A stretch of 64,000 nt of DNA from the NCBI GenBank assembly GCA_002811645.1, contig PDIP01000022.1, positions 107,417 to 171,416 on the forward strand. The letters are read 5' to 3'. Positions 49,212 through 58,386 of the stretch are shown here, piece by piece. Below the pieces are notes generated by a model that did no database searches, was not told the origin of the DNA, and saw only the letters and a list, made by a program, of their open reading frames with translations. How positions within the stretch are numbered: position 1 is the first letter of the stretch; each line of letters begins with the position of its first letter. The translations under genes and the position numbers were made by a program. Source of the DNA: Corallochytrium limacisporum Hawaii. Its lineage: Eukaryota; Protista; Pluriformea.

Positions 49212-51575
49212 ATGGGAATAAGTGAATCTACGCTTCGGTTAAGGTCCTCCTTAGGGCGCTTGACAGCGAATGATCCAGAAGCACTTCTCGACAGTGCGTT
49301 ATGGGATACGATTCTGGATGGAAACAAGACCTATGATGAGATTTATCAGAGCACAATTTTGTCAGAACTGCGGGACATTCGTAACAATGCACCACAAAAT
49401 CTTCGGATAATATGCAAAAAGATAGTAGAACAACTTTACGAGGTGGCTTCAAAACGGAAAGAAGGCGCGACAGAGTACGACTTTGCGCAAGTCAAAACAT
49501 GTGTGCGTCTAATCACTCGCCTGGTGCCAGTGATCTTTGAAGCAACTGACGATGAAGAAACATTTGAGGATAGCATAGAATACTACGTGTTTTGGACCCC
49601 TCCGAACAAACGGACGTCGTCGTTCAGTAGTGTTAGTAGTGTTGGCGAACCACACAGACTGCCGCCGGGTAAGTGCTTGGGTGAAGTTCTGATTGACAGT
49701 CTGGGACAGTTGGCGTTTTTCCCTGGGTATACCATCCCAAATTCTCTTGGAACAGACCCAAAGAGCGTCATCTGGGAGGTCGGTATCGGTGTCGACTACA
49801 TTGAGAGTGCCAACTCAGCCATTGAAGCAAATCGGGCGGACATTTTGAGGGCTTTCTTAGCTTGCTTCAGCCGGATTCTGAACTCTAAACCCATGAAATA
49901 CAATGCACGGGAGAACCGATGGCTTGGGTACTTTGCTAGCCACAACAACAGGCTTGCATTACCCTTCTTCCTCAGCTTGCTGAACACTGTATGTTCTTAT
50001 GACCCAGTCGGCTACGGACTACCTTACAGTTACATGTTCGTGGAAAACAGAGATCCGTTGATCAGTTTATGTATTTCAACCTTGAATGTCCTGTTGGATC
50101 ATGACATTCATGCCCGAGTCAAGAGGGGCGAGAATGCGGACCAGATGCCAGAAGGAAATCCCATCGGCTCACCAAAGGTGGAAACGAGCGACCAGAACAA
50201 TGTATCTGAAAGCAAGACCGAATCTGCAACGCGACCGGATCCATCACAGCCTAAAGCAGGTGACAAGCCCAAACCAAATGTTGGTACCGAAATCACCCGC
50301 TTTCAGTATGCAAATGTGTTTTGTGATTTCCTCAGTCGCTTGCACCGTCCTGATGACCTGCGCTTTGCCCTGCTCGGTTTCATTCGACTGATCAAGAACC
50401 CCTTCCGGAAGGTGTATTTGCCGGGTGCTGCGCGCCTCGTCTCCTTCTATCAGGAACTGTTAATCCTCTTCTGGAAGTTTTGCGATCTGAACAGGTCATT
50501 TCTGTACTTCCTGTTGAAGAGCAACCATGTGATTGATATCAGCCTGCCACTACTGGGGTTCGTTGATCGGCATAGGCATGAAGTACAGTACACGGGTCTG
50601 ACCCATCTCTGTATTTTCATTCTACTGCTGCTGAGTGGGGAGCGAAATTTTGGTGTAAGACTGAACCGGGCGTATTCGCCATCTGTTGAATTCGATCTCT
50701 TGAATCTGCGTGGTAACTATGCGGACCTGCTGATTCTTGTGTTCCATCACTTGATCACCTCGGGCCACGAGCAACTGGACAGTTTGTACGACTGCATGCT
50801 CACAATCATTGTCAACATCAGCCCGTACATCAAGTCGCTAAATCGCCAATCTGCCTCCAAACTGCTGCACCTGTTCGAGCTGTTCTCAAGCCCGAAGTAC
50901 GTACTAAGTGCGCCAAACAACCATCATCTTGTGTTCTTCTTACTGGAAATCTTCAACAACCTCATCCAATATCAGTTTGATGGCAATGCCAATGTGGTAT
51001 ACTGCATTGTGCGGCGCCGCAGGGCATTTGATGCGCTAGCCAACCTGCACGTTGGAATGTCGCAGCAGGGTAGTGGCGATCTAGCAGGTAATGTCGGCAT
51101 GCGCAACACCCTTACGCGGGGGTCAGCAGTGTACACTAAGGCGTTCTCCACCCAGCCCAAGAACGAGACTCTGGGAAGCTACAATCCCCGGGATCCTATC
51201 ACTCCGAGCAACATCAATGAAGCGGACATAGACGAGAAGGGTCTGCAGGAGTGGGTACCGACAAAGGAATGGCTGCAGAGCTGGAAGTCCAAGCTGCCGC
51301 TGCATACCATCGCGCGTCTCTTACAGGTTTTAGTACCGCAAGTTGATAAGCTAATCAACGAAAAAGGTATCAGCGATGAGCAGCAAATTGTGGACTTTTT
51401 GAAGAACGGCACATTGGTCGGGCTGCTGCCAGTGCCACATCCAATTCTGATTCGCAAATACCAGAGCACGAGCGGTACGAACCTGTGGTTCACAGTCTTT
51501 GCGTGGAGTATTATCTACGTGCGTAGCGACTCGCCTTGCATATGGGAAGGATTGGACATCCAGCTCTTCAATTGA
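49212..51575 (+). CDS. HID1: HID1 (Dymeclin/HID1 family Golgi protein; 787 aa)
   Basis: MG start (myristoylation-compatible); IWEVGIG, SLLNTVCSYDP, LLLSGERNFGVRLN, EIFNNLIQYQFDGN, WKSKLPL, GTLVGLLPVPHPILIRKY. Confidence 0.95.
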   Translation: MGISESTLRLRSSLGRLTANDPEALLDSALWDTILDGNKTYDEIYQSTILSELRDIRNNAPQNLRIICKKIVEQLYEVASKRKEGATEYDFAQVKTCVRLITRLVPVIFEATDDEETFEDSIEYYVFWTPPNKRTSSFSSVSSVGEPHRLPPGKCLGEVLIDSLGQLAFFPGYTIPNSLGTDPKSVIWEVGIGVDYIESANSAIEANRADILRAFLACFSRILNSKPMKYNARENRWLGYFASHNNRLALPFFLSLLNTVCSYDPVGYGLPYSYMFVENRDPLISLCISTLNVLLDHDIHARVKRGENADQMPEGNPIGSPKVETSDQNNVSESKTESATRPDPSQPKAGDKPKPNVGTEITRFQYANVFCDFLSRLHRPDDLRFALLGFIRLIKNPFRKVYLPGAARLVSFYQELLILFWKFCDLNRSFLYFLLKSNHVIDISLPLLGFVDRHRHEVQYTGLTHLCIFILLLLSGERNFGVRLNRAYSPSVEFDLLNLRGNYADLLILVFHHLITSGHEQLDSLYDCMLTIIVNISPYIKSLNRQSASKLLHLFELFSSPKYVLSAPNNHHLVFFLLEIFNNLIQYQFDGNANVVYCIVRRRRAFDALANLHVGMSQQGSGDLAGNVGMRNTLTRGSAVYTKAFSTQPKNETLGSYNPRDPITPSNINEADIDEKGLQEWVPTKEWLQSWKSKLPLHTIARLLQVLVPQVDKLINEKGISDEQQIVDFLKNGTLVGLLPVPHPILIRKYQSTSGTNLWFTVFAWSIIYVRSDSPCIWEGLDIQLFN

Positions 51576-51650
51576 ACAAACACTGTTTCCAATGTAAACA
51601 ATCTAAATGTACGCTATGTCATGTTATTTGAGATATATGCAACTAGTCTG

Positions 51651-52175
51651 TTAGAATGACGATGCCGAAGACGAGATTGATGGCGATATGGATACACGCT
51701 TCTTATCAATTTCATGCTTGGGAATAGGGCCTGCCTTGTCCAGGGGCCACAGCCGCCAAACTGCAACCGCCCGCACCATGCCCAGAGGGATTGGTCCGTA
51801 GAAATTGCTATCCTTGCTATTCCGCAAGTTGTCACCTTCCATCCATGCATGGCCTGCAGGTATGTCAACCTTGCCAATGTAGGGCTCTCGACGCATCACA
51901 GTCTCACCATGAGTTGCACAGATTCGTTTGATAACCGACGACCGAGGCTCGTCTGGAAGCGCCATCACAACGACATCGCCCTTTTCGTAGTTGTGCCGAC
52001 GGGCGGTCCATTTGTTGAGTAAAATTATTTCATTGTCCCGAGATTCCGCATTTAAGGATGGCTGCATGCTGTCGCCCTTGACCAGCGCTAGGGAAAAGAA
52101 ACAATCCGTAAATGCCAGACATACTGGCACTGTGTACCACAGCGCGCGGACAGCATCTCTGATTGCTTGGCGCAT
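51651..52175 (-). CDS. IMMP2L: Mitochondrial inner membrane peptidase subunit (IMP2-like, S26; 174 aa)
   Basis: GDSMQPSLN (Ser), GDVVV, IKRI (Lys), GHAWMEGDN..NSKDS..YGPIPLG. Confidence 0.85.
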   Translation of the reverse strand: MRQAIRDAVRALWYTVPVCLAFTDCFFSLALVKGDSMQPSLNAESRDNEIILLNKWTARRHNYEKGDVVVMALPDEPRSSVIKRICATHGETVMRREPYIGKVDIPAGHAWMEGDNLRNSKDSNFYGPIPLGMVRAVAVWRLWPLDKAGPIPKHEIDKKRVSISPSISSSASSF

Positions 52176-52858
52176 TGCTCCGGCGTCATCACCCTCGAGA
52201 CACGAGGTTCACTATTATATCTTTTGCTTCTTGATTGCTACTCCCTTACATATTCATACATCCTTAAAAATAGAATCATGCCACTCTGAATTGTATTCTT
52301 TGTGGTTACAATTTGACCGTACATTGCAGACAGGCACACCTCCCAAGGATTCCTTGTATTCAATCCCTTGCTTTAACTCTAAAAGTACCCAACAAAAAGA
52401 TCTCGCAGAATTTTTGTCGACAAAAAAATGATGGAAATGTATGCAAAATTTATGTGATTATGTTGTCATCCTAGGATTGGGAAATGGACATGGGATGAAG
52501 AAAGGGAACAGAGGCTCATCGCACCGTCACCCAAGCTTGAACCGCTGACCCGGGGGTGCGGTTGCAAGGCTCCACCGGCCCTCCGCGTTTCCCCGGGGGG
52601 CAGTTTGTGTCGGTTGGGGGGACCGTATGAGGAGAGGGGGTAGAGGTTGCTGGCAATGCAGTAGAGAATAGCCACTGCTTCATCAGGCCTCCATTGGTCC
52701 ATGAGAGCACCATGGAGCATCCTACATGAGTAACATGACTCTGTGAGGATCAGCTTAGCTCCTGGATGTTCAGACCAAGTACGACATTGTCACTGTTCGT
52801 TCTGTGGAAACTGGATCGGGCTCTATTCACCAGTGTTAGAAGGAGACCATCTCGCTAC

Positions 52859-52954
52859 CTAGGCAGCAGCGCAGAGCTGGCAACCAACACAGCAGAAGAG
52901 TGCTCCGACGCAGATGAAGAGCATCTTGAAGGGAAGGAAGATAAGTCCGAGCAT
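52859..52954 (-). CDS. Cys-rich hydrophobic microprotein A, 31 aa: MLGLIFLPFKMLFICVGALFCCVGCQLCAAA
   Basis: Hand-translated (below the ORF-track cutoff); paralogous to 55303-55401; A/C-rich leader; shared upstream and downstream motifs. Confidence 0.8.
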   Translation of the reverse strand: MLGLIFLPFKMLFICVGALFCCVGCQLCAAA

Positions 52955-53048
52955 GTTGAATGTGTTTGCGTTTGCTTATTGCTGATATCGTATGATATTC
53001 TGTACTTGTTCTGTTCAATGTCCTAGGTAGATCAGCGACCCGGATCTC

Positions 53049-53060
53049 CTTAAATACGTT
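53049..53060 (-). promoter_or_regulatory. TATA-like 12-mer AACGTATTTAAG upstream of microprotein A
   Basis: Identical 12-mer at an equivalent distance upstream of microprotein B. Confidence 0.6.
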
Positions 53061-55302
53061 AAGGCCAGCCCTTATCCTCTACTTCATCTCTAACACAAGT
53101 GATTGTAACATCGCTGATGAGTATCAATGCCGCCGATAGACCCTATGTGAAACACATATTCGTCAATCGCTAGCACCGGGTCAAAACCCCTGAACCCCCT
53201 TTTCCCCATCTTGATGTTCAAACACCCCCCCCCCCTTTTTCAATTGCGAAGCGACCTCTCAAGCAAGACGGGTATTGAATGGCTTGGGGTACTGAGAAGA
53301 AGCAGAAAAGAGAAGGGGGGGGGGAATCGATGGGCCACTGCTCCACCCTGCTCAACTTGTGGTCAAAAAATCAATGAAGTCACCACTGGGCCGAAAAAGA
53401 ATATCTTCCTCCGGTTGTCAATATACCACCACCAGCCGCAACTGTAAATCCACACTATAGTTTCAGACCTACTTGCAACTGCCAATTGTGCTCGCATAAA
53501 CGAAGGAGATGGACATCGTCCGTCGTACATGTGCGCCAACGGACACCTACAATATGCAATGGGCTCGGAATGATGTATAACGTAATAGTCATGTAGTTCC
53601 AACCCTTGCCTCTGTTCCTTCGGACGGGCTGACTCGATTGCCAGCTCCACAGAATCGTTGGCAAGTATATGGTGCCTCAGTAGCAATGGCAGCTATCACC
53701 AAGTACTACCTACGTCAACCACAGCAGTGCAGCCCCGACATAGTTGGACTTGAGATTGATTGTGATATGTGTATGGCCCACAGAGAGTTGCGATGGAATG
53801 TAGTTTTAGACTTGCCAAAAGCGACCATAGCTATCGGAACTCCCACCAACGCTTGCGCCTGCGCGCTGAAATGTGTGCTTACTCCAAAAATTGTCGACAA
53901 GGATGCCAATCACAGAGAGCACCGGGTACTCAAATGCCTGGTCATGCAGCCCATCGGCTCCCGGCCACCCAACACCATCCCACACTCAGCAGAAGCACGA
54001 AGTTATGCTCGGTCCCACCTGCCGCGTTTGGCAGTTTCCTCTCCGCACCACTCGTTCTCCTCACCTAAGCCGGTCGCTTCTACACCCCCCCCCCTTCCAC
54101 CCCACCGCTTCCCCGCCGTTGTCTTACTCTCGGGAGGCTGGGTGTAACGGAATAAATTACACGTTTTGCTCTGAGTGTGTTAACCCCCCCGGGGCCCCCG
54201 CTTGGGAAAGGTACCTTAAAGCTTTTGAACATGAGTGAATTACGTAGGGGACCGAAATCAAAAAAATATTTTCACCAACCCCAGGTGCGAAAGCCCCATA
54301 CATGTACTATAAAGTATATGTCTCTCAACCATGGAAGTTCATATCCATTCCTCTGCGTAGGCAATGAGAGATATCGTTGTGTGCTGATGGAAAAATTTTA
54401 CTTCAATGATGATCAAAGCAGAAGAAAAGCTGTATATTCATTATCGAAAATTCAACACCTGGTGATGATAAGGACCTTGCACACGCTTCGTCTGCGTTGG
54501 CTAGGATGAGATACAGATAAGTCCAGATATTGGCAACAGCGTACGCGTACACGCTAGCCTTCATTACAGTGAGTTGTTTGCTGGCCGAGCGGAGGCGGTA
54601 ACATTGAACAATAACGGACACAAGATAGTACTGGCAGTGGCATCTAGTGACAAGCGTTACGCATGTTGTGTCCATCCTCAAGCCCCGCTGGTCCGCTGCT
54701 GTCGTTGCGCACTGGGGCGAGTCTCTGAAACTTTGGCGCCGGTTCCGTCCTCAGGCCAAACCCGATTTCCTCATTGTTGTGATTGGCTTCACGTCTACTA
54801 CCATTCTCTTGGACAATAAGATAAACTCCAAATAGATCAGCACTGTGTGACCTGCCCCTTGGACGTCAATCTTCATGATCAGTGACAATAGCTACCTGAC
54901 GTTGGTGTACAGGTTAGACTTCATTGACCATGTAGGCCGTGGTAAAGATTTTGGAGCGGACATAAGTAGTTTAATGTAGTATTAGTTGCATGAAATATAC
55001 GATAATGGTGTCTATAATTCGGAAATGTGTATGCTATATGTGGATCTACAGAGGTTGAGTGACTGACAAAATTTCATCAGGACCAAGAAAAGTGCCAAGG
55101 GGAGAGACACGGGGCACCGTCACCTAACCTATGTGGGAGAAGGTCAGGGTTAGAGAGCCGAAAATGACTGGCGTCACCGGCTTCCATTGGTTCGGCAAAA
55201 TCAAACCAAGTGCGACGTAGGTAAAACTCTCCAAATTCTTTTGTTGTTGTGGAAACTGACCGTCGGTCAGGGTGTGGTTGTGGTACTGAGTTGACTGTTC
55301 AA

Positions 55303-55401
55303 TCAGGCCGCAATGCAGCATGCACAGCCGAAGCAAACAAGGATCGCTCCTAAGCAGGCTGCGATCAGCTTGAAGGGTGCAAGGATGATAGTCTTAAGCA
55401 T
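55303..55401 (-). CDS. Cys-rich hydrophobic microprotein B, 32 aa: MLKTIILAPFKLIAACLGAILVCFGCACCIAA
   Basis: ATG in CAATCAAAAATG context within track ORF 55303-55494; paralogous to 52859-52954. Confidence 0.8.
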   Translation of the reverse strand: MLKTIILAPFKLIAACLGAILVCFGCACCIAA

Positions 55402-55498
55402 TTTTGATTGTTTTTGTGTTCTTGGATTGTAAGATAGTATTTCTGTTCTCTTGTGAATGACTCCCGCTGGCAATATCAGATTCATGAAACGCACCTAT

Positions 55499-55510
55499 CT
55501 TAAATACGTT
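55499..55510 (-). promoter_or_regulatory. TATA-like 12-mer AACGTATTTAAG upstream of microprotein B
   Basis: Identical to 53049-53060. Confidence 0.6.
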
Positions 55511-58386
55511 TCTGCTCCCGTCATTCGAACTCGCAAATTTACAAACCGCGTGACGCCTTGCGCCACAAGCATCCACCTCATCCTCTGGATAGCGCAATGT
55601 CCTGCCAACCGTCCAAGATAACAATTATGCACACATTGGACTGCATACTCGCGTTGTTGGAGTCGTTCATGCACTCGTAGGCCCTACCCCTACCAACGAA
55701 GGATCCTTCCTAAAAGAGCAGCTCCTGAAATTCTCGCCTGTCTTTCCTTTACCTAAGGACACCCACACACCAACAGGGTCGCAAGATTGGCTCCCCCCTC
55801 TTTTCCTAGTGGGATCCTTGCCCCCCCCCCTCCCCTTTCCCCCTCGGAAATCTTTTTCGCACAAAACAGCTTAGTACGTTCTGCATATTTTTCTGGCAGT
55901 TGGGGGTTCAAGTGTGTATGAAGGTTTGCTAATGATGTAATCCAAAGGGCGGCATGGGTTTGGTATTGGGAAAATATATCGGGGGTGTCGATGCATTTTG
56001 TAATTGGGAGTTTGTCGATTCTCCCGTGTCCCAGGCATGGACGAGTTTTGGGTATGGTAGATGGCTCTTCCGTATTGCACCAGCTGCTGTCTGCTGTGTT
56101 TTGGATCTTAATTCACTGCATTGCTTGGGTGATCATGGCGGTTGAAAATCATTCGCGGTGGCGGCGCGGTACACACTTGCCAAGATTTTGTGTGATGTGC
56201 GGGTTTCTTGCCCACAAACTTTTTAGTTGTGTATGTATGCCCGCCGTGCCCGTTCCAAATTCCACACACACACACCAACTCGTCAAGCTCACATCCCCGA
56301 AGAAAAGATTTTGTTGCGTTGTCCATTTCTACCTCTGCGTGGATGAAATTGATGTGAAAACATCGAGGTACTAAGCAGATCATTGCATTCGAAAATTCTT
56401 GGAATTTCGGTGGGGTTGTTACACAGCTGCACATTTTCAGGCTATGCCCGGTGTACCCAGGCCACAACGCTTGTGTGGCCCCCCCCCCCCCGACCTGTGC
56501 GGTTGATTCATTCAGTCTCCCCCGCTTGGCCCACCCACAAACCCAACGCAATCCACCCAGGAAACAACCGGGACCCAACTTTCCAAGAATGGCAAGGCTT
56601 AGCCCACCAACCGATTTTCTCTTGCCAATAATTTAGGTATTATATAGCCCCTGTCTCACTTCCACGTCCTTTCCATTTACCTCTTGGCGTTGTGCTTATT
56701 TGTACAGAATCGAACCCGACGGGAGGGCGCGATGAAAGAAAACATAATACTGTGAGAGGGCTGTGAGTACGTATAGAAGGGAAAAAAAATACTTCCTGGT
56801 CTCCCTTGGCCCAACTTCAGAATATACCTAGCCGTACTACCGGGCGAAGAAATATACTTCGCCCGCTCCCACAATTTTTTTCTCCCCGCCGGTAACTTCC
56901 CTAGCGAAACCAAGAGTTGCTGGGAATCCATATGATTTGATTCATTTGATGATATTTTTATGACAGCCCCGGTTCCATCAACCAGAGACCTGTTGCGGCC
57001 TCTCTCCGGAATGCCCCGGCAACGGTCAGCCTTGCAGTTCAGTACTACCTTCAACACTGCAGATCGTTCACGATTGGCATGCCACCAGAGGAATACTGTG
57101 ATGCGTCCCCTCTCGTTATAGATGCTGTCCGTTTTGATCGATCTCAGCGAGCCATGCGGGAATACCTTGTCCAGATCGCCGCGAATCCATGTACATCGAC
57201 CTTGAGTACCTCGTAGCACGGCTAGATCATGGGTTCCCCACCGTCTCAATCCGTGTTCTAATCAGCCCCCTCCAACTGCGGTAGCGAATGGACTGGCTTT
57301 TTGGACAGTCCTATATTTTGACTATGACCTGGTCCGTCTCAGCAGGCGTGTCTATTTAACAAATCTTAGGAAGGGAGGTTGGCGGCCAACCACACACCAG
57401 CGGATGAGCGCATAGTTGCAAACTTCCGTCCCCCAGTATATTTATTATGACGACGTTGCATAACCAAATTGATAGGTCACAACACCAAGGTCTGGGAAGG
57501 CGCATGGACTTGTGGACTATTGTGAAAGTGTACGGTATCTCCGTTGGGGACTCGAAAGTCTCCCTTCACTTCTGGCAGTTTCGATAGGTCACATACTCCG
57601 CGTGCCGGAGGAAGGGTCTATCGCGTCCGAAGCAGAGTTTAGTACTGAATGTATGGGGAATAGTGAGACATCGGGTGCGATTCCGGGCCCCGGTTGGGCA
57701 CCAAACTCGAGGTGAGACTACGAAAAAGTTAATATACACCACTAGAGAACATAAGATCAATATATTACATATGGCAACCCAAATGAGGGAAGAATGAGAC
57801 ACCTATCCATCGATAATGACTTGGGTCCCTACCATTTCCTTTCGCAACGTTGGTCCCGCCATGGAAGATTCCTATACTGAATGAATGGGGCGGGTTCGGC
57901 TGCGGGGCACGGAAGTGCGGAGCCCGGTGCGGGAAGAGGAAGATCTCAGCCCGCCCGCGCCGCTGCCGCTTGGTTGGTGGACGGCGCGGCTGAATAGAGC
58001 TTGTCACCTTGTTGAGCTGGAAGAACGAGTCTTAGGTGTCTCTTAAGTCTAAATGCCTTCTGTTCCGCAAAATTACTCAAATTCGATGCTCATGCTTCGA
58101 GTCTGGTTCCTTGGTTCGTGGAACGTAGACTTCTGTCCAACGAAGACGCCCTTTGGCCATAGTCATACTTTGTTTGCAGGTATTTTAACAATCTGGCGCC
58201 TCGACATACTGTAGACATCGGGTTTCGTATAATGGGACTCTTCATTGTGGCCAAGGTGCTCGGATCTAAAAAAAAATGGGCACATGATAGTACGTTAAGA
58301 AACTGTTAAGACTTTCGTATAGCATGGCAAGCGTGTAAGGAAAAACAAAACACCTGATTTTCCGAAGGTTGTAGGCAACTTTCAAG

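Follow-up and report, generated by a model that had tools for sequence, protein, structure and literature searches.

Two short, transcribed and previously unannotated genes for predicted Cys-rich hydrophobic peptides in Corallochytrium limacisporum

The evidence presented here supports two very short open reading frames of Corallochytrium limacisporum Hawaii, A and B (Table 1), as real, transcribed and unannotated genes of predicted peptides. C. limacisporum is an intron-poor unicellular holozoan, that is, a single-celled relative of animals, and its assembly (GCA_002811645.1) comprises 24.1 Mb in 286 contigs. The two genes add to an annotation that had missed them, and their analysis also yielded candidates for a core-promoter motif and for a 3'UTR element of this species.

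A paralogous gene pair in a 6.2-kb gap

As reported in the first-pass annotation, both minus-strand ORFs were found in an apparent gene desert; they are about 2.45 kb apart, within a 6.2-kb gap (52176-58386) of the window, the 64,000-nt stretch of contig PDIP01000022.1 analysed here. The gap is bordered on the left by a HID1/dymeclin gene and a peptidase S26 (IMP-like) gene, and on the right by an LtrA-family gene. Alignment of the predicted peptides reproduced the count of 15 identical residues (15 of 32 columns), with a single gap near the N-terminus and the PFK/Cys signature gap-free as described; all six identical residues said to use different codons proved to be correct synonymous pairs. 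The BLOSUM62 score of the alignment is 82, compared to a shuffle mean of 29.4 (sd 5.9), and none of 20000 shuffles reached that value. A and B are tandem-duplicated paralogues, each with its own transcription.

Protein-level selection on real genes, as had been proposed, is borne out by the substitution pattern, by codon usage, by a shared promoter motif and by RNA-type contigs at both loci. Comparison of the two copies, suggested at the outset as a check, gave pN of 0.37 and pS of 0.67 (dN 0.5 and dS 1.7, Nei-Gojobori), resulting in a dN/dS of about 0.3 (Fisher P=0.014), and codon position 2 is the best conserved (23/32, versus 16 and 15 at the others); these conservation statistics are thin because they derive from two sequences only. 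Given the amino-acid sequence, the synonymous codon log-ratio between a coding model built on the long genes of the window and intergenic DNA was significant for A (P=0.008), for B (P=0.010) and jointly (P=0.0006). Phe is encoded by TTC in 6/6 and Ile by ATC in 6/7 cases across the two ORFs, the same preference as in a gene that we take to be RPS28. In both ORFs, the ATG has A at position -3 and is equally far from the promoter, and ORF length and stop register are equal.

RNA coverage, the other check suggested beforehand, came from two 2015 runs, X1 and X2, the RNA type of which was guessed automatically and the contigs of which show presence, not strand, ends or level. RNA-type contigs cover A in both runs and B in X2; B has no contig in X1, a hole that proves nothing. 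The contigs stop at the edges of the genes, and none lies over most of the gap. X2 displays scattered differences from the assembly, and we infer that it represents the second known strain (the known strains being from India and Hawaii). The sole X2 difference within an ORF, at 52907, falls on the third position of Val16 in A and is synonymous.

The suspicion that the genes were probably unannotated was also supported: A and B appear to be so because neither occurs in a 15-billion protein collection that does contain both tested neighbours, originating from EukProt. EukProt lists one protein of this contig under the name Clim_evm29s134. Short ORFs are rarely called in annotations, and overlooked lineage-specific micropeptides are common.

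Several other interpretations of the loci were rejected. Selenocysteine incorporation or stop read-through is contradicted by the different stops (TAG in A, TGA in B), followed by another in-frame stop 12 codons on and by extensions that are unlike each other. A 60-aa N-terminal extension of B would need an ATG that is separated by a mere 25 nt from the start of the TATA-like motif, and it has no equivalent in A. The ORFs are not uORFs of a larger gene, the contigs being devoid of a downstream ORF, and no tRNA or known ncRNA was identified at the loci. A CUGAUGA in A, readable as part of a hammerhead or C/D box, is not collinear in B.

Table 1. Features of the A and B loci (positions in the window)
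Feature	Position	Strand	Remarks
TATA-like core promoter 12-mer of A (candidate), AACGTATTTAAG	53049-53060	minus	106 nt before ATG
ORF A	52859-52954	minus	31 aa, TAG stop; first ATG after the 12-mer; ends C-A-A-A-stop
3'UTR block 1 of A	52803-52813	minus	5' strand of predicted outer helix
3'UTR block 2 of A	52771-52785	minus	5' strand of predicted inner helix
3'UTR block 3 of A	52686-52701	minus	3' strand, complementary to blocks 2 and 1
3'UTR block 4 of A	52521-52531	minus	11-mer, no conserved pairing partner
RNA-type contig over A, run X1	52412-53104	.	approximate transcript, ~450 nt 3'UTR
RNA-type contig over A, run X2	52648-52993	.	
TATA-like core promoter 12-mer of B (candidate)	55499-55510	minus	109 nt before ATG
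ORF B	55303-55401	minus	32 aa, TGA stop; ends C-I-A-A-stop
3'UTR block 1 of B	55248-55258	minus	
3'UTR block 2 of B	55202-55216	minus	two bases differ in run X2 (55208-55209)
3'UTR block 3 of B	55179-55194	minus	
3'UTR block 4 of B	55114-55124	minus	
RNA-type contig over B, run X2	55177-55389	.	

Peptide features, distribution and relation to CYSTM proteins

Both peptides are hydrophobic from residue 1 (GRAVY of 2.09 for A and 2.11 for B) and contain five Cys each; Lys residues before position 12 are the only charges, Asp and Glu being absent from A and B alike. From the two-row alignment, AlphaFold2 predicted a single helix for B (residues 3-31, pLDDT 74). The PFK motif is followed in both peptides by a doubled heptad, C-x-G-[A/C]-x-x-x, which on such a helix would align Cys16 with Cys23 and Gly18 with Gly25 in two separate stripes, and the four fixed Cys (16, 23, 26 and 29; B numbering throughout) fall within 140 degrees, on half of the helix. 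Both peptides end in C-x-A-A-stop, which places a Cys in the CaaX-box position; since this end shows no significant excess of conservation over the other residues (binomial P=0.21), a CaaX box is no more than a lead. The initial description of the products as membrane-bound or lipidated peptides fits these predicted properties.

The term 'family' used in the first-pass annotation is justified insofar as there are two paralogues, but just two copies in one genome were recovered: a profile, two codon patterns, a DNA search and the 3' motifs revealed no further copies in the assembly. No homologue was found in Pfam, NCBIfam or PDB sequences (with one match at E=0.11 in PHROGs), among 1.84-billion representatives, by a word-index search with frames N-terminally extended to the 40-aa minimum, or in scans of metagenome, prokaryote and viral contigs that were confirmed by tblastn, searches of low power in which A versus B would reach only E=16-19 at library size and which covered no close relatives. 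B alone as query missed A in its own genome. The ESM Atlas yielded no homologue when searched by features and generic helices when searched by shape, and degenerate codon patterns run against the metagenome, prokaryote and viral contigs retrieved only chance frames, either Arg-rich or with stops. The combination of a hydrophobic helix over the whole length, a doubled C-x-G-[A/C] and a C-x-A-A end thus far seen in one species appears, judging from the sequences, to be an undescribed type of micropeptide.

The suggested loose likeness to CYSTM holds only as an analogy. CYSTM/CYSPD proteins (PF12734; yeast Cpp1-3, plant PCC1 and CDT1) are likewise small and eukaryotic, and a helix rich in Cys and hydrophobic residues forms their very C-terminus. 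However, neither peptide matched any Pfam model at E<=10, the hhalign probability of CYSTM for the micropeptides was 9%, and a PF12734 search of the genome returned a canonical member (C143:98390) and one more match, with A and B not among them. CYSTM modules have 3-4 consecutive Cys among 5-6 (PMC2804304), whereas at most two of the five are consecutive in A and B. The peptides also lack both the acidic residue that follows the Cys-rich helix of CYSTM, as does the genome's own CYSTM tail, and the Pro/Gln-rich polar head of most members; conversely, CYSTM is characterised neither by an N-terminal PFK segment nor by C-x-G-[A/C] heptads such as those of A and B. Compared to the genome's own CYSTM tail, B is weakly similar (shuffle P=0.026) and A is at chance level (P=0.37); the two peptides may be distantly derived from a CYSTM-type tail. 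The canonical CYSTM gene resides on the same contig as A and B, ~62 kb away (C143, ~98390-98830, minus strand), and encodes a P/Q/Y-rich head and four consecutive Cys; its product ends C-L-F-S, with a Cys that is itself in the CaaX position, and is the one without the usual acidic residue.

Membrane anchoring and competing explanations

The interpretation that we tentatively prefer, and to which we assign slightly less than an even chance, is that A and B are lipid-anchored membrane proteolipids, S-acylated and possibly farnesylated, acting in the manner of CYSTM/CYSPD tails. Being so short, the peptide would be released from the ribosome and would reach membranes after translation, folding as one hydrophobic helix with the Lys charges limited to the N-terminal third. 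The conserved Cys 16, 23, 26 and 29 would be S-acylated, as was found for the CYSTM/CYSPD tails of yeast, and farnesylation with no subsequent trimming may occur at the Cys in position -4. By analogy, the lipidated helix would stay in a cell membrane and pack through its Gly/Ala/Cys face on itself or on a larger membrane protein, and this packing might tune the activity of the partner or the permeability of the membrane, probably in response to stress or during a certain life stage. Every inferred step is testable, since stable transfection exists for C. limacisporum (10.1101/2020.11.12.379420).

Data from yeast bear on both kinds of lipid. CYSTM tails were found to be palmitoylated rather than transmembrane (PMC10840359). 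CAAA passes the Ydj1-based score for yeast FTase (HM 4.27, cut-off 3; PMC10320760), and CIAA obeys the stated FTase rules, again on yeast data only; because most CXXX ends pass, passing yeast FTase says little. CAAA is predicted to be prenylated but uncleaved (PMC9231725), and in a Ras-based yeast screen that needs full CaaX processing, CAAA scored 0.10 and CIAA 0.20 with few reads, the cut-off being 3 (PMC4358939). Three prenyltransferase beta-type genes and ICMT matches are present in the genome, as in most eukaryotes. A counterpoint to the lipid anchor is that B is hydrophobic enough to span the membrane as a plain helix, in which case its Cys would be buried.

A and B could be unlipidated single-pass transmembrane micropeptides with a cytosolic N-terminus that serve a pump, a channel or an enzyme as accessory subunits, with the Cys used for packing or disulfides. 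Yeast Pmp1/Pmp2, phospholamban and sarcolipin are the models for such a role and likewise consist of a hydrophobic helix of 30-50 aa, encoded by a short ORF on its own mRNA and often by paralogue pairs. The 21 uncharged residues past the PFK motif, the Lys on the N-terminal side only, the small residues on one face and the continuous predicted helix are all as expected, but five Cys in 31-32 residues, four of them at fixed positions, go beyond packing needs, and by an approximate insertion scale the core of A is only a borderline transmembrane segment. Moreover, no sequence similarity was found to the Pmp1/Pmp2, phospholamban or sarcolipin families, from which A and B differ by far more Cys and by the lack of a cytoplasmic basic or phosphorylated tail, and we regard this explanation as unlikely. 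Less likely still are membrane metal or redox buffers, in which the thiols of an oligomer would chelate Cd, Cu or Zn or quench oxidants. Such a role was proposed for the CYSTM module and plant CDT1 (PMC2804304) and would suit a Cys ridge on one helix face that includes a C-x2-C pair (26/29), yet later yeast work found such Cys to be palmitoylated (PMC10840359), acidic or His ligands are missing, and the PDB matches are only chance-level Fe-S motifs (E 2-9).

A bolder proposal, improbable in our estimate, is that CaaX prenylation and multiple acylation make the peptides lipopeptide signals or organisers of membranes, of a sort undescribed outside fungi; their use would vary with life stage or strain, and their mRNA would be controlled by a new structured 3'UTR element. 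Improbable as well are precursors of exported farnesylated lipopeptide signals of the fungal a-factor type, with each paralogue giving rise to a different signal. A and B do resemble fungal lipopeptide pheromone precursors (a-factor, Ustilago mfa) in being tiny, precursor-sized ORFs, easily missed by annotation and duplicated, here in tandem, and in sharing a Cys at -4; their strong promoters also agree, as do the FTase-type and ICMT genes of the genome and the appearance of B in one of two RNA runs (with the caveat given above for X1). Unlike those precursors, however, A and B are hydrophobic throughout and carry four additional Cys as well as Ala at a2. Neither a polar pro-region nor an obvious cleavage site is seen, and any mature peptide would be rich in Cys and highly hydrophobic. 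Their ends score low in the Ras screen (on low read counts), CAAA is predicted to stay uncleaved (PMC9231725), both genes occur in the same assembly, and no STE3 receptor was identified, the best PF02076 match reaching 17.9 bits (cut-off 29.2) over 57/292 positions. A search of the literature found no lipopeptide signals on the animal side of opisthokonts. If prenylated and exported, A and B would be the first known to us there; if they are only lineage-specific proteolipids, the outcome would be a solid but modest gain in annotation.

Shared flanking motifs and a candidate RNA element

The DNA around the ORFs had been described as largely unalignable. This overlooks five short conserved blocks, namely, an upstream 12-mer and four blocks downstream. 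An upstream 12-mer common to A and B arose in 5/1000 shuffles, and AACGTATTTAAG has 7 exact copies in the genome, as against 1 for the reversed control. The five other copies are located on contigs C59, C176, C213, C263 and C275: one lies 96 nt before the RPS28 start, two about 136-139 nt before similar-looking ORFs with signal-peptide-like starts (one encoding a 175-aa Cys-rich protein), one precedes an ORF of 93-120 aa, and one is without a clear assignment. We consider AACGTATTTAAG a candidate TATA-type core promoter motif for C. limacisporum.

The downstream flanks of A and B share 8 9-mers, compared to a shuffle mean of 1.0 (2/1000), and contain the four short 3'UTR blocks in collinear order. 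Block 3 can base-pair in a nested arrangement, first with block 2 (inner helix of 8 pairs) and then with block 1 (outer helix of 7). The predicted helices would stack along a single uninterrupted 3' strand, while the 5' side has an insertion of 26-40 nt between them and the terminal loop varies. In the core blocks alone, 12 nt pair in both genes versus a shuffle mean of 7.5 (0/4000), whereas block 4, the control, has no such excess of pairing. Between A and B, one pair has both partners replaced (C-G to U-A), a compensatory change, and two further pairs have one partner replaced. Pair probabilities are 0.2-0.4 in A and for the outer helix of B, and 0.85-0.98 for the inner helix of B; the folding z-scores of the element are unremarkable. 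The X2 difference in block 2 of B is at the foot of the inner helix, where two pairs would break. Rfam covariance models applied to the 6.2-kb gap gave a single match (E=8.2), outside both 3' elements, and searches of the genome showed the blocks together at no other site. With two sequences compared, the odds that the pairing represents a real conserved structure are about even; such an element might control mRNA stability, localisation or translation. A second in-frame stop is situated exactly 12 codons past each stop (52820-52858 in A, 55264-55302 in B) and, because the intervening sequences are unlike, probably reflects a conserved spacing to block 1.

Four conserved non-coding blocks, three of them mutually complementary, are also what one would expect if the functional product were the RNA, with its structured 3' region, and the ORFs were incidental or untranslated. 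This is very improbable: dN/dS is below 1, codons are biased, ORF length and stop register are equal, the strain SNP is synonymous, and the context of the ATG and its promoter distance are the same in both genes, whereas the RNA has no Rfam match and its folding is unexceptional.

A low-depth RNA-type contig between A and B (54716-54936, run X2) may correspond to the far 3' end of B or to a separate weak transcript; it overlaps the chance-level Rfam match, to the C/D-box RNA sR44 (E=8.2, 54736-54778). At the left border, the convergent HID1 and peptidase S26 genes (49212-52327) are 75 nt apart and are covered by one RNA-type contig in both runs, which suggests that their 3' ends overlap. Upstream of B, ~2.9 kb (55510-58386) contain several G/C homopolymer runs and no long ORF, and are free of RNA contigs up to 57000; this is probably a long regulatory region common to B and the divergent LtrA-family gene.
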